30,153 nt of DNA from sequence record OQ473815.1. One strand, 5' to 3'. Below are positions 2,246-30,153 of this stretch, piece by piece (position 1 is the stretch's first letter; every line of letters begins with the position of its first letter). A model generated the notes under the pieces. It was not told the DNA's origin, made no database searches, and saw nothing but the letters and a program-made list of their open reading frames with translations. The position numbers and the translations under genes were made by a program.

Positions 2246-4120
2246 ATGTCCGAACTATCTGATCTTTTGCAAAAGTTTAACGTAACTAAGTTAAACACTT
2301 TTCAAGAGAAGGCTTTGATCGCCTTCTTAAAAAGTAAAAAGAACCTTATTTTATCCGCCCCTACAGGTACTGGTAAAACCCTTTTAATGGAGATGATGCT
2401 ATATTTAAACAATGGTAAAGGAGTCTACGTCTCACCGTTAAAGGCTTTGTGCGATCAGGTTGCTAACGAGCTAGGTAGAGTTACGAGCGTGCAAGAGTTG
2501 ACTGGTGACGTTTACTTAGATGACAGTTCTGACGTTAGCGCTAACGTTGTGGTCTCAACTTATGAAAAGATGGACTCTATACTGAGACGCCCTTACTCGT
2601 GGTTAGATGATATCTCACTTCTCATACTAGATGAAGTTCATAACATGCGTTATCAAAAACGTAGTGAAGCTATAGAACTTGTCTTAGCGTGGGCTTTAGA
2701 GCATGGAGTTAGGATAGTGGTAGGTAGTGCAACTATCGCTGGGCTTTCACGTGTAGAGAACTGGCTTAACGCTGAGATAATATCGCATGATACTAGGAGC
2801 ATTCCCTTATATGAGTTCGTAAAGTATGGTACAGTCTTGATTTCGTCTGATGGTAAGCGTTATCAGTTAGATCGTAGCGTGATTGACTTTATAATTGGAA
2901 AGGGTAAGAATTTGCTGATATTTGAAAGTACTAGGAAACTAGTGGAAAGCGTATACTACACGTTAAAGGGTAGATACGGCAATCAGGTAGAGATGTTTCA
3001 CGGCGGTATGGACTGGGATACTAGGAAAAAGATACTGAGTAAGATAGAGAGCGGTAACGCTAAGATAGTAGTGAGTACAACCGCATTAGGTCAGGGCGTT
3101 AACTTACCGTTCTATGCGGTATGGTTTAGATCAATGAAATTGCCGGAAATTGAAAATGGTAGATACAAAGGGTTTAGATATTTAGATGTTACAGAATATA
3201 AACAGATAGCGGGTAGGGCTGGTCGTCCCCGTTTTGATAAAGAGGGTATGGCGATAATTGAAGCTAAAAATGAGTGGGAAGCTAGATACTTTTTAGATAC
3301 ATATTTAAATGGTAGTATTGAACAAATTGATGGATATTTATCACTTTTCAAGTATATATTAGTACAATTGTCTAGGAGAGGTGTCGCCGATTTTAATCAA
3401 TTATATTCAGGGTTACGTTATACATTTTCACTTAAAGATGTTACACAGAAACAAATGTTAGATATGTTAGAAATAATGAGGTCGTTAGGATTGATATATT
3501 CAGACGGTGTTAATTACAGTATTGAAAAGTTTGGTACTGCGGTCGCATTTACATATTTAGATCTAGAAGATGTAAGATATTATAAAGATAAGTTTGAGAA
3601 AAAAGAATTTGACATATTAGAAGTAATTGCAAATTCGCCTAAAGTTAGAGAACAAAGTAAAAATAATGATGTATTGCCAATATTGGAATATTGGATAAAA
3701 GGTGATGATATTAATGCATTAACTAGATTTAGTAGTAATCTTATGGAAAAAGATATACAAAATATAATAGATATCGCCACATGGCAAGCATATTCAATTT
3801 ATTCACTTATGAAAGCATTAGATGATAATAGGCAATATATAGCGTTAAAAATGTGGTTGAGATTAGAACACGGTGTACCCGAAAATGCGTTAAATTTAGT
3901 TCAAGTTAGTGGAATTGGTCGTAAAATTGCTGTATTTTTAGCAAATAAAGGATATACTAAAAAATCTGAAGTGTGTAGTGATTTGTCAAAAGTAAAGGAA
4001 TTAATGCAAAATGATGAAGTAATGCAAAAACAATATTGGAGAGTACAACAGATTTGTGAAAAAACTACTAGAAAAGCAAAAAGGCAATTAAACGCTAAAA
4101 TAGAGAATTTTGATAAATAA
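2246..4120 (+). CDS. Superfamily 2 DExH helicase, Ski2/Hel308-like, with C-terminal HhH
   Basis: APTGTGKT, SPLKAL, STYEK, DEVH, SAT, FHGGM, STTALGQGVNLP, QIAGRAGR; VSGIGRKIA HhH. Confidence 0.95.
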   Translation: MSELSDLLQKFNVTKLNTFQEKALIAFLKSKKNLILSAPTGTGKTLLMEMMLYLNNGKGVYVSPLKALCDQVANELGRVTSVQELTGDVYLDDSSDVSANVVVSTYEKMDSILRRPYSWLDDISLLILDEVHNMRYQKRSEAIELVLAWALEHGVRIVVGSATIAGLSRVENWLNAEIISHDTRSIPLYEFVKYGTVLISSDGKRYQLDRSVIDFIIGKGKNLLIFESTRKLVESVYYTLKGRYGNQVEMFHGGMDWDTRKKILSKIESGNAKIVVSTTALGQGVNLPFYAVWFRSMKLPEIENGRYKGFRYLDVTEYKQIAGRAGRPRFDKEGMAIIEAKNEWEARYFLDTYLNGSIEQIDGYLSLFKYILVQLSRRGVADFNQLYSGLRYTFSLKDVTQKQMLDMLEIMRSLGLIYSDGVNYSIEKFGTAVAFTYLDLEDVRYYKDKFEKKEFDILEVIANSPKVREQSKNNDVLPILEYWIKGDDINALTRFSSNLMEKDIQNIIDIATWQAYSIYSLMKALDDNRQYIALKMWLRLEHGVPENALNLVQVSGIGRKIAVFLANKGYTKKSEVCSDLSKVKELMQNDEVMQKQYWRVQQICEKTTRKAKRQLNAKIENFDK

Positions 4121-4136: not shown

Positions 4137-4252
4137 TTATAAAGAGAGTTAATAATAAATGAAAGAAGCTATTTATCAATAGAGCTATTAATAAATGAAA
4201 GAATAAATTAAAGAAGCTATTTATAAAGAGAGTTATTAATAAATGAGAGAAG
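4137..4252. repeat. Degenerate purine-rich direct repeats
   Basis: TTATAAAGAGAGTTAwTAATAAATGArAGAAG at 4137-4168 and 4221-4252 (2 mismatches), third partial copy near 4188-4203; AAAGAAGCTATTTAT twice. Confidence 0.85.
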
Positions 4253-26566: not shown

Positions 26567-26658
26567 ATCTGTTCAAGTTACGATTGGATACAGAAAATAA
26601 AAAGATTTTTGTTGTAAAACATAGAAAGGAATATATCTGAGAGGTAAACAATAAACAT

Positions 26659-27486
26659 ATGATAGTCCAAATAAAGGCTTACCACAGGAAAAGGAAGACT
26701 GTGGTGTTTGACGATAAGATACCTGACACGTTGATAGAGGCGGTTTACCCTGGGTACGAAATAGAGAGAGAGGAACAAGGAATGATAGAGGTTGGGTCAA
26801 ACGTTGGATTAACTAAGTTCACCCCATCACTTATCAACCCACCTAACTGGTCAGACTATCACGTGGACGGACTGAAGTTGGTCTCAAACTTCTTCTCAGT
26901 ATCACAGTTCACGTTAAAGCCAAAACAGACCTTGGCAGTAGCCAGTTACGTGTTACCTAAAACCGTTGCGTTAAAGAGGACCGGAAAACCAAACGTCATA
27001 GTTACAGCCTATCACGTAGCTAACATGGGAGTGTTCTCAATAAATGAGACTAACGTTAGCGTACCAGCAGTCATCGTGAAGACAGACAACGCAAGGACGT
27101 CAATAATAAATTATAACCCTACAGTTAGGAAGGTTGAGGAGAGGACGCTAGTGATAAGTATACCAAGGGACATAGGATACCTTGAGTACGATAAGGTAAA
27201 AATAAGTGAAGGTGAGGAGTTGGCGGGTGTGGTGTCAGGTACTGATGGAAATCACGGGTTCGTTGCACCGTACCAGAACTTCTTTATTGAAGGAGAGAAA
27301 CTGGTAGCGTACACCCCATTACGTGGTGAGATCACGTTAACCGTAACTGACGCTAACGTTAGCTATGGGATAGTGACGAGTTACAATAACAGGATCATGT
27401 ACGTGGAAGTGGAGAAAGGAGTGGAAGTTAACAAACCGTTCATGCACGGAGAGAGCGGTAGCCCAGTGTTCAGGAGGTCTGGTTGA
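26659..27486 (+). CDS. Chymotrypsin-like (clan PA/S1) serine protease A
   Basis: VTAYHV (H119), RDIGYL (D171), GESGSPV (S266); ends 9 aa after the Ser. Confidence 0.8.
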   Translation: MIVQIKAYHRKRKTVVFDDKIPDTLIEAVYPGYEIEREEQGMIEVGSNVGLTKFTPSLINPPNWSDYHVDGLKLVSNFFSVSQFTLKPKQTLAVASYVLPKTVALKRTGKPNVIVTAYHVANMGVFSINETNVSVPAVIVKTDNARTSIINYNPTVRKVEERTLVISIPRDIGYLEYDKVKISEGEELAGVVSGTDGNHGFVAPYQNFFIEGEKLVAYTPLRGEITLTVTDANVSYGIVTSYNNRIMYVEVEKGVEVNKPFMHGESGSPVFRRSG

Positions 27487-27489
27487 GAG

Positions 27490-28392
27490 ATGCCAATAAG
27501 GATAGGTTACAAAGTTGACCATAACAATCACCTCATAGTTGTGTTCGACAGTATGATAACTGACGCTTTCATAAACAACTTATACCCAGGATACGACATC
27601 AAGAGGACGATAACGAAAACGTATGACGAACCTAAAGTTAACGACCAGCCTAACGTGGATCCATACTCAGGTAACTACCCAATAACCATGACCGCAATAA
27701 GGAACGTAACCAACCCATGGTTCACCTACCAACAGAACGGATATGAGATATTACAAAGGCACTTCAAGGTTAACACCCTCTTCCTAAATGAAAAGAAGAG
27801 CAAAGGAACGTTAGGTTTCGTACTGAACTCGGTGAGGGCTTTAGAGAGGACTGGGAAAACAAACGTGGCGTTAACCGCATATCACGTTTGCGCGATGCCG
27901 TCATTTGAGAGCATGACTGGGATAGCCATACCAATGAAAAGCGAGAACACGAAACTTAACTTCACCACGTCACCAATAAACAACAGCGTGTCAATAGTCA
28001 AGATAGCGCCCAACACGCTAGTCACGTCAATAGACTCAGACTTGGCAATACTGGAGTACGAGGGTAAACCCTACAACGGAAAGGAGAAGATATTCACAGG
28101 TAACGATTACATAGAGGACTTCAGGATAATAGGTGTGATATCCGCAACGTTCCCTGACGAGAGCGTAATAGCACCTTTCACTAATAACGTTGAGGTAGGA
28201 GATGAGGTAATAATGGGTGGCGTTATGAGCGGAATAAGGAAAGCGAGGGTGAAATCAAAGAACGTTGAGTACGCCCTACTGGACTCAAGGGACCAAAAGA
28301 AGATAATAGTTATGGTGAAGAACGGAATACTCGTTGACAAACCGTCAATACCTGGCGACAGTGGGGGACCCGTAATAAAGAAAACTATTTAA
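27490..28392 (+). CDS. Chymotrypsin-like (clan PA/S1) serine protease B
   Basis: GTLG, LTAYHV (H132), SDLAIL (D184), VGDEVIMGG..SG, PGDSGGPV (S291); ends 9 aa after the Ser. Confidence 0.88.
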   Translation: MPIRIGYKVDHNNHLIVVFDSMITDAFINNLYPGYDIKRTITKTYDEPKVNDQPNVDPYSGNYPITMTAIRNVTNPWFTYQQNGYEILQRHFKVNTLFLNEKKSKGTLGFVLNSVRALERTGKTNVALTAYHVCAMPSFESMTGIAIPMKSENTKLNFTTSPINNSVSIVKIAPNTLVTSIDSDLAILEYEGKPYNGKEKIFTGNDYIEDFRIIGVISATFPDESVIAPFTNNVEVGDEVIMGGVMSGIRKARVKSKNVEYALLDSRDQKKIIVMVKNGILVDKPSIPGDSGGPVIKKTI

Positions 28393-29266: not shown

Positions 29267-29303
29267 TAAATTTATTAATGGGAAAACAGATATATAAACA
29301 CAT

Positions 29304-29323
29304 CCCCCCCTCGTTTCCCTCCC
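29304..29323 (-). other. Putative G-quadruplex-forming sequence at inner ITR boundary
   Basis: Minus strand GGG-A-GGG-AAACGA-GGGGGGG fits the G3N1-7 x4 pattern. Confidence 0.45.
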
Positions 29324-29397
29324 GCGCGTCACCAAAAACTTTAAATACCACGATGCTACATATTCTCACAAGTGATAAAATGATTCAGGAGGAGACG

Positions 29398-30153
29398 ATG
29401 AAGAGGTTCGTTGCGATGAATGATACCTCAGACGTCTCACTCCCGAATCTCATTCTGATTACGCCTGATGAATTGTCAAATGAATTGAAAGAAAACTTTT
29501 TGAATGCTCCTTTCAGGTGGTTCGTCGTCCACAACACCGAAATGTCGCTCGAGAGTCGCATCGTGGCAAGACGCATCATGTCACAAGATACCAGCATCAC
29601 GTCGCAAGACAACACGTCGCACCAAGTCACGTCGCACGAGAACCACACCAGAACGCACCAGAACCACGTCACACCAAGTCACAACGAAACGCAAGACAAC
29701 GCATCGCACGAGAACCACACCAAGTCGCACCAGAACGCGTCGCACCAAGTCACGTCGCAACGCAACGAAACGCACCAAGTCACGCCACTCAGCACCACGT
29801 CGCACCAGGACCAAGTCACACCGGACCACACCAGCACCAAGTCAGACCACGAAACGCAACCGAAAGATTTAAATATCCGCAATGAGATAGTCAACGTTTC
29901 TTTCTTTCCCACTACTCAACTACTACTACTACTCAAAGGAAATAAGAACCAACCAATCAACCAATCTACCAACATACCAATCTACAAAGATACCAAAAAA
30001 GAAACGTACCAAAACATCAACGAACCAAATAAGAAACGTATCAAAACAGAAACGAATCAAAACAGAAACAAATCTATCTATAATATAATATATAAAAACA
30101 AAAGAAGAACGAACGAATATTATATATATAATAATAACAAAAGAAAACAGAAT
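29398..30153 (+). CDS. ITR-encoded ORF open to window end (at least 252 codons; not in ORF track)
   Basis: TTTAAATA box at 29340-29347, GGAGGAG RBS; MKRFVAMNDTSDVSLPNLILITPDELSNELKENFLNAPFRWFVVHNTEMSLESRIVARRIM then a His/Thr/Gln-rich tail; no stop codon. Confidence 0.6.
   Translation, partial: MKRFVAMNDTSDVSLPNLILITPDELSNELKENFLNAPFRWFVVHNTEMSLESRIVARRIMSQDTSITSQDNTSHQVTSHENHTRTHQNHVTPSHNETQDNASHENHTKSHQNASHQVTSQRNETHQVTPLSTTSHQDQVTPDHTSTKSDHETQPKDLNIRNEIVNVSFFPTTQLLLLLKGNKNQPINQSTNIPIYKDTKKETYQNINEPNKKRIKTETNQNRNKSIYNIIYKNKRRTNEYYIYNNNKRKQN
29580..29870 (+). repeat. Degenerate 5-bp-periodic repeat tract
   Basis: Recurring GTCGC, GTCAC, ACCAA, ACCAG, AACGC, AGAAC units; very T-poor + strand. 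Confidence 0.85.
29940..30153 (+). repeat. A/C-rich low-complexity terminal tract (AACCA/AACAA/AACGA-like; TTGTT-like on minus strand)
   Basis: Seen directly; extreme strand skew. Confidence 0.7.

Follow-up and report, generated by a model that had tools for sequence, protein, structure and literature searches.

The window analyzed here is the complete sequence record OQ473815.1 (30,153 bases), the genome of Saccharolobus shibatae rod virus 2 (SSRV2). It contains two adjoining open reading frames (ORFs), SSRV2_ORF51 and SSRV2_ORF53, here called ORF A and ORF B, whose products resemble chymotrypsin-fold serine proteases that stop shortly after the presumed catalytic serine (Table 1). In the publication describing the record the virus is called SIFV3, a lipothrixvirus originating from a Tengchong hot spring; no protease is mentioned there. 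The title of the record says 'rod virus 2' and its taxonomy stops at Viruses; gene content and the publication assign the virus to the Lipothrixviridae.

Comparison of A and B revealed paralogs along the full length with 30% identity (E = 4e-36). ORF B follows ORF A in the same reading frame directly behind the short junction listed in Table 1. A GAGGT motif is located 13 nucleotides upstream of the ATG of ORF A. ORF B possesses an ATG and a GGAGGT motif of its own and is thus able to start independently. A second record of the same virus, OP999015.1 (SIFV3_1), shows the same TGA GAG ATG junction between near-identical flanks. In this record a run of N lies inside ORF A (about 1940-2130, corresponding to window positions 27119-27311), because of which ORF A is unannotated there.

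Both proteins contain the motifs TAYHV, D-hydrophobic-A/G and G[DE]SG[SG]P. These motifs stand in the order His-Asp-Ser, with the putative triads His132/Asp184/Ser291 in B and His119/Asp171/Ser266 in A. In A a Glu replaces the Asp before the catalytic Ser (GESGSP). The proposal of an earlier reading of the DNA, made from its letters alone and called the sequence-only reading below, that both proteins are homologs of chymotrypsin-fold proteases was borne out. For native strands 7-10 (B 233-300) and streptogrisin B residues 88-148 an hhalign probability of 89-92% was obtained. Native B matched the Pfam profiles Trypsin with 14.9 bits (gathering cut-off 20.6) and Trypsin_2 with 14.6 bits (cut-off 27.6), both below threshold. 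For native A no match was found in Pfam, and the NCBIfam search yielded nothing.

A family set was assembled by profile search and metagenome scan. It comprises 36 aligned sequences and, in addition, the proteins AFV3 ORF267b and AFV9 ORF269 (38 together). Only 7 proteins were returned when 1.84 billion representatives were searched exhaustively with HMMER, and searches of IMG/VR and GTDB genomes gave no additional relatives. The known distribution of the family so far is confined to lipothrixvirus genomes and metagenome contigs. By tblastn with B one homolog each was detected in AFV3, AFV7, AFV8 and AFV9, covering 98% of B in the first three and 68% in AFV9. B also matched PHROG 18698 ('virion structural protein') with an E value of 1.1e-12. 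A is connected to the AFV family indirectly only, via B and via the family profile. Two further proteins contain stretches that look identical to parts of B. P0002 (190 amino acids), from a metagenome-assembled genome of Thermoplasmatales, carries residues 1-42, the complete N-terminal segment, fused to a membrane protein resembling the major facilitator superfamily. P0006 (92 amino acids) carries residues 49-79 behind the N-terminus of an epimerase. Both have arisen either through chimeric assembly or through genuine recombination at the borders of modules.

In the canonical chymotrypsin fold strands 1-6 carry His and Asp, strands 7-10 carry Ser195, and strands 11-12, which contain Ser214 and the substrate-binding edge, are followed by a C-terminal helix. 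A ends in GESGSPVFRRSG and B in GDSGGPVIKKTI, in each case nine residues past the Ser, as the sequence-only reading had noticed. In streptogrisin B, the nearest solved relative (its sequence is identical to 1sgd_E), 44 residues follow the Ser. The corresponding tail measures 7-12 residues in all 36 aligned relatives as well as in AFV3 ORF267b and AFV9 ORF269. The strands and the helix that normally come after GDSGG are thus missing from this place in 38 of 38 proteins. The match of B to Pfam Trypsin stops at profile position 186 of 220, with 34 positions remaining. Since the same short tail is found in every member, the early stop is a fixed family trait; chance, truncation and a sequencing artefact are ruled out. 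At the other end, a related strand-turn-strand segment stands at the start of every family member. The strings quoted for this shared segment in the sequence-only reading are correct; approximately 38 residues align between A and B at about 50% identity.

The His, the Ser and the glycines flanking the Ser are invariant in the 36 sequences, and the Asp is invariant in a nine-sequence alignment. AFV9 ORF269 has a Glu (EYEVAIMY) at the position of D184, where all other members have Asp. B 204-225 had also matched streptogrisin strands 5-6, which would have allowed an alternative location of the Asp; this reading was rejected, as that column is unconserved whereas D184 is conserved. Across six deep lineages ten columns are invariant (B numbering): W77, H132, P148, D184, G215, S218, G248, G289, S291 and G292. 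G215 and S218 form the only invariant Gly-x-x-Ser outside the catalytic motifs.

These two residues lie in a candidate hairpin (B 211-229, A 186-204) that follows the Asp strand and precedes strand 7. At this place B has RIIGVISAT, A has LAGVVSGT and the majority of the relatives have KLLGVVSM. The G215-x-x-S218 spacing of B equals the Gly211-x-x-Ser214 spacing of canonical proteases, and the sequence resembles the strand 11 motif of the whole clan, lvGIvSwG or aIGLTSGG with Ser214. Mean BLOSUM scores between lineages were +1.06 for the first hairpin strand, +1.35 for the Asp strand and 0.2-0.6 for strands 7-10. The first hairpin strand is thus the most conserved non-catalytic strand. The two N-terminal strands scored -0.38 and -0.77, lower than every core strand.

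The aligned hairpin (B 204-232) was relocated behind the Ser, and the rearranged sequences were searched alongside five kinds of controls: deletion only, a reversed hairpin, the N-terminal hairpin, an unrelated window and a whole-chain N-terminal permutation, in which the first approximately 40 residues of each protein were moved to its own C-terminus. With the hairpin moved, matches to Pfam Trypsin or Trypsin_2 increased or newly appeared in eight of ten members. The matches passed GDSGGP and reached positions 198-201 of 220 in Trypsin and 144 of 144 in Trypsin_2. None of the five control kinds produced a comparable extension. The Trypsin score of B rose from its native 14.9 bits and 16.8-17.3 bits in the controls to 19.5 bits, and the Trypsin_2 score of the member P0017 rose from 12.4-12.5 bits in the controls to 19.1 bits. 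The member L005-, unmatched before, reached 18.8 bits. Among 14 members the number of Trypsin_2 matches increased from 3 to 7 and that of Trypsin matches from 1 to 3. The profile search against the PDB gave 97 hits with E ≤ 10 for the hairpin-moved form, compared with 2 for the native form, 4 for the N-terminal permutation and 10 for the reversed control. Nearly all of those listed for the hairpin-moved form were PA proteases (streptogrisins, DegQ/HtrA, trypsins) whose alignments crossed the junction. For streptogrisin B the E value was 0.63 with the native form, 0.11-0.15 with two controls and 0.023 with the hairpin moved, and the alignment reads GDSGgpvyl..ggdllGvvSat through the junction.

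According to the sequence-only reading the N-terminal 38 or so residues supply the missing strands, to be checked by aligning the first 40 residues with protease C-termini. The sequence tests did not support this proposal. Placed after the Ser, the segment extended or improved no match in Pfam, the PDB or hhalign, and append tests with the hairpin either kept or deleted gave no lengthening. The whole-chain N-terminal permutation left the Pfam match of B unchanged; for A a 12.5-bit Trypsin_2 match appeared. Trypsin_2 was matched by 3 and Trypsin by 1 of the 14 members after this permutation, equal to the reversed-hairpin control. Among the four PDB hits the streptogrisin B match still ended at residue 148. 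In hhalign against streptogrisin B the match end was at 148-149, again with no extension. The profile of the N-terminal segment alone found only a chance hit to WASP in the PDB.

The structure of B was predicted with AlphaFold2 (AF2) in two runs based on alignments of 5 and 36 sequences. Both runs gave a mean predicted local distance difference test score (pLDDT) of about 50. The N-terminal segment and the second-barrel region were modelled together with confidence, residues 43-206 were not. Within residues 207-300 confident strands were assigned by DSSP at 211-220, 225-229, 239-244, 248-267, 270-282 and 294-298; the hairpin strands 211-220 and 225-229 had pLDDT values of 73-79. As modelled, these six strands would be enough for a second barrel without the N-terminus. 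Foldseek found only weak matches in the PDB (six-stranded barrels, NAL1, streptogrisin A (SGPA)). In BFVD the model of the AFV8 homolog (A7WKJ8; E = 2.9e-9) was the only strong viral fold match.

We propose that the second barrel is circularly permuted, with the strand order 1-6, 11-12, 7-10, followed by the stop; on the sequence comparisons described above we give this order about an even chance. A and B would be two separately translated, paralogous serine endopeptidases of the chymotrypsin fold (PA clan), in which the hairpin corresponding to strands 11-12 is placed between the Asp strand and strand 7. With strands 11-12 placed before strand 7 the chain ends straight after strand 10. As with Gly193/Ser195, the backbone of the G-D/E-S-G motif would form the oxyanion hole. 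The role of Ser214 would fall to the invariant Ser218 in B and Ser193 in A, with residues 218-220 as the edge strand to which the substrate backbone pairs. For the first 40 residues we predict a small strand-strand-helix-strand unit that is connected to barrel 1 through the variable linker and packs as an accessory against the second barrel. This unit may substitute for the lost C-terminal helix or act like a pro-region or built-in folding aid. This strand order would result if the second barrel was duplicated in tandem and both ends were subsequently lost. In trypsin the disulfide Cys128-Cys232 ties a residue immediately past strand 12 (232) to one immediately ahead of strand 7 (128); owing to this proximity the new join between strands 12 and 7 would be geometrically easy. 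The sequence-only reading had explained the early stop by a permuted architecture. Permutation as such remains likely, whereas the N-terminal segment gives way as the moved part to the hairpin, which passes the same tests.

Several observations weigh against the relocated hairpin. The gains after moving it amount to a few bits, and every profile score stays under the Pfam gathering cut-off. In a sliding-window test, in which copies were appended and compared with 121 closely related streptogrisins, the hairpin gained 1.0 bit and unrelated windows up to 4.2 bits, which reflects chance similarity. The hhalign score against streptogrisin B changed only from 49-50.7 to 51.4, with a narrow comparison profile whose listed matches are 84-99% identical. 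Owing to the high Gly and Ser content of the query, Smith-Waterman alignment of the streptogrisin strand 11-12 segment with native members gave no information. A single-sequence phmmer search of the PDB with rearranged P0005, a metagenomic family member, found nothing. Barrel 1 had pLDDT values of only 25-30 in the AF2 models of B. Two further points concern the chain ends. The N-terminal elements of B, two strands, a helix and a strand (Table 1), follow one another in the same order as those of the streptogrisin C-terminus. The first strand starts at residue 2-4 in every lineage, and 1-4 residues come after the last strand, as expected of a cut in the turn between strands 10 and 11.

The last two points would fit a whole-chain circular permutation in cis. 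The N-terminal unit would then represent strands 11 and 12, the C-terminal helix and the last strand, the linker 41-74 would join the old termini, and the hairpin 211-229 would be a family-specific insertion between the barrels. The size of the segment, about 40 residues, equals that of the missing piece (44 in streptogrisin B), and tandem in-frame copies are a classic permutation intermediate. The segment (pLDDT 69-87) was modelled together with residues 207-300 and the remainder was not, and a predicted template modelling score (pTM) of 0.55 for B suggests, as a rough inference, a single rigid unit. However, the segment extended no match when placed behind the Ser. None of its residues is invariant and its strands show the lowest conservation in the protein, which would be odd for a strand lining the active site, and the invariant G215/S218 hairpin is left unexplained. 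We consider this explanation unlikely.

Alternatively, the proteins could be pseudoproteases, non-catalytic virion components with a decayed protease fold in which the early stop reflects partial loss of the barrel. The homologs in AFV3, AFV7, AFV8 and AFV9 are labelled 'virion structural protein' in RefSeq and PHROGs, every Pfam score is below threshold, and Glu replaces Asp both before the Ser of A and at the triad Asp of AFV9. Both of these changes are conservative, however, and among lineages that share only 20-30% identity there is no variation in the His, the Ser, the glycines of GxSG and the strand with Gly-x-x-Ser. Conservation of the triad, these glycines and the Ser214-type strand at such low identity indicates selection for catalysis and argues for A and B as active endopeptidases. 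Decay to a non-catalytic component appears improbable.

The gene copy number bears on the suggestion of the sequence-only reading that A is completed in trans by B. A single copy is present in AFV3, AFV7, AFV8 and AFV9 and on the short metagenome contigs L007 and L008, and glycosyltransferase genes usually adjoin. In another virus (L005/L006) there are two divergent paralogs, which are encoded on opposite strands in head-to-head orientation. On the metagenome contig L006 (2045-3794) the paralogs are followed by a ThyX-like ORF with the motif RHRIASYTQMSHRF and by two ORFs resembling NADH dehydrogenase subunits A and C; this contig is either a virus fragment beside host genes (an integrated element) or chimeric. 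A rough, long-branched tree places A with P0005, which comes from another genome, and not with B, and the duplication therefore looks old, subject to these branch lengths. Completion of the A barrel by the N-terminal segment of B, through an obligate heterodimer, a switch or a TGA read-through fusion, is consistent with the TGA GAG junction, with a read-through sequence ...GESGSPVFRRSG-x-E-MPIRIGYKV... that by eye resembles the canonical GDSGGPLV..G.lvGI spacing and with the existence of viral PA proteases with a cofactor strand (NS2B-NS3, NS3-NS4A), but it cannot be the general mechanism of a family with single-copy genomes, opposite-strand paralogs, an apparently old duplication and a B gene with its own start, it would leave the C-terminus of B without a partner, and we regard it as highly improbable.

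The virion location of the family rests only on the database labels of the AFV homologs. As a guess, a protease carried in the virion could serve in the processing of virion proteins or in an attack on the envelope of the host during entry. We see somewhat less than an even chance that the family represents a natural protease in which only the C-terminal barrel is permuted (11-12-7-8-9-10), with the N-terminal mini-domain as a stand-in for the lost C-terminal helix or as a folding aid, and thus an unannotated and possibly packaged protease family of filamentous archaeal viruses. The chymotrypsin fold ranks among the best-studied folds of enzymes, and to our knowledge the order of its strands is regarded as fixed. 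In a literature search of incomplete coverage, so that its negative outcome is absence of evidence only, we found no paper naming a lipothrixvirus protease or discussing these ORFs and none on a circularly permuted trypsin-like protease. If the proposal is correct, a family that keeps the catalytic residues with one barrel re-ordered would show how much rewiring the fold tolerates, and protein engineering would gain a natural point close to the active site at which to split the enzyme. The escape of the family from annotation would be explained as well, since the standard profiles all score it below threshold. A conserved lipothrixvirus gene now labelled hypothetical or structural would gain an enzymatic role, and the question of the substrate would arise, with capsid proteins, terminal-claw proteins, pili and the surface layer of the host as candidates. 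The tandem in-frame pair of A and B would be a plausible snapshot of the duplication stage that gives rise to permuted proteins.

Table 1. Features of ORF A and ORF B in the window (OQ473815.1)
Feature	Position	Strand	Remarks
ORF A, SSRV2_ORF51	26659-27486	+	275 amino acids; GESGSP motif; stop TGA 27484-27486; annotated as hypothetical protein
A residues 1-38, N-terminal segment	26659-26772	+	strand-turn-strand-helix-strand, assumed via alignment with B 1-40
A, equivalent of the B linker	26773-26841	+	
A, equivalent of B 75-88	26842-26883	+	
A His119 (TAYHV), putative catalytic His	27013-27015	+	invariant column
A Asp171 (RDIGYLEY), putative catalytic Asp	27169-27171	+	alignment
A residues 185-207 (GEELAGVVSGTDGNHGFVAPYQN), proposed relocated strands 11-12	27211-27279	+	G190 27226-27228; S193 27235-27237
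A residues 208-275, second-barrel strands 7-10	27280-27483	+	Ser266 27454-27456; aligned with B 233-300
A-B junction, TGA GAG ATG	27484-27492	+	Shine-Dalgarno-like GGAGGT motif 11 nucleotides upstream of the ATG of ORF B
ORF B, SSRV2_ORF53	27490-28392	+	300 amino acids; GDSGGP motif; same frame as ORF A; annotated as hypothetical protein
B residues 1-40, N-terminal segment	27490-27609	+	AF2 model, DSSP: strands 4-10, 15-18 and 36-39, helix 25-31; pLDDT 69-87
B residues 41-74, linker	27610-27711	+	variable in length and sequence; between-lineage score -1.23; pLDDT <50
B residues 75-88, conserved NxW..(H)xxG..L motif	27712-27753	+	alignments; W77 invariant
B His132 (TAYHV), putative catalytic His	27883-27885	+	invariant column
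B Asp184 (SDLAILEY), putative catalytic Asp	28039-28041	+	invariant in nine-sequence alignment; Glu in AFV9
B residues 204-232 (GNDYIEDFRIIGVISATFPDESVIAPFTN), proposed relocated strands 11-12	28099-28185	+	G215 28132-28134; S218 28141-28143, putative Ser214 equivalent
B residues 233-300, second-barrel strands 7-10	28186-28389	+	Ser291 28360-28362; chain end nine residues on

All genes adjoining ORF A and ORF B are of unknown function. The annotated coding sequence SSRV2_ORF52 (75 amino acids, 26573-26800, minus strand) runs antisense to ORF A, covers its promoter and its initial 142 bases, and is probably not a real gene. Several arrays of tandem repeats, with period lengths of 71, 36, 32 and 16 bases, occur at the right genome end (29628-30069) and probably represent the terminal repeats of this linear genome. 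Both ORF56, annotated at 29278-30153, and the long ORFs rich in Arg and Thr at this end are probably non-coding. A tandem repeat of 48 bases (4139-4251; 2 copies, 90% match, inner period 16 bases) directly follows the largest ORF (2246-4120). ORF3 (558-1178) is annotated as 'CRISPR/Cas system associated protein' in this virus genome and is possibly an anti-defence gene or a hijacked Cas-related gene.

Among known systems, streptogrisin B, streptogrisin A and alpha-lytic protease (MEROPS S1, bacterial chymotrypsin-like subfamily) gave the best sequence and profile matches and were the first PDB hits in every profile search; SGPA was also among the Foldseek hits of the B model. The proposed His-Asp-Ser triad and the Ser214-type strand are common to the streptogrisins and A/B. 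In streptogrisin B strands 11-12, the helix and the last strand follow the Ser, whereas A and B have only nine residues there. In contrast to the streptogrisins, A and B lack a signal peptide and possess a 90-residue N-terminal extension. Streptogrisin homologs carry the pro-region Pro_Al_protease (PF02983), which was not matched in any family member at E values up to 10.

With the HtrA/DegP/DegQ proteases (S1C) and Pfam Trypsin_2 the A/B family shares the Asp motif D-[LIV]-A-[IVF]-L. The hairpin-moved sequence GDSGgpv..g.llGvvSa aligns with GNSGGALVN-AKGELIGINTA of the HtrA type. By eye, the second hairpin strand (xVAPx or YLAIP) also resembles the HtrA motif gFAIP. Unlike HtrA, DegP and DegQ, A and B contain no PDZ domains, they would have another strand order, and their scores lie below the gathering cut-off.

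In the flavivirus NS2B-NS3 and hepacivirus NS3-NS4A proteases the barrel is completed by strands of a separate polypeptide, and the order of the core strands is canonical. The dependence of the flavivirus protease on NS2B has been described (PMC4530887). In these systems the second polypeptide is always co-encoded, in contrast to the A/B family, in which most genomes have a single gene, so that the barrel must be completed in cis. Rice NAL1 was the top PDB match of the first B model in Foldseek, a weak one (E = 4e-3, TM about 0.25) from which no kinship can be claimed. In NAL1 73 residues follow Ser385 inside the protease domain 184-458 (PMC12012508), which we take to mean that it has the usual strand order.

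The closest counterparts in known viruses are AFV3 ORF267b and AFV9 ORF269, full-length homologs with 24-25% identity to B. They carry no protease annotation. Both share the early stop and the N-terminal segment with A and B. They are present in single copy inside a capsid/glycosyltransferase module, whereas A and B are located near the right genome end.

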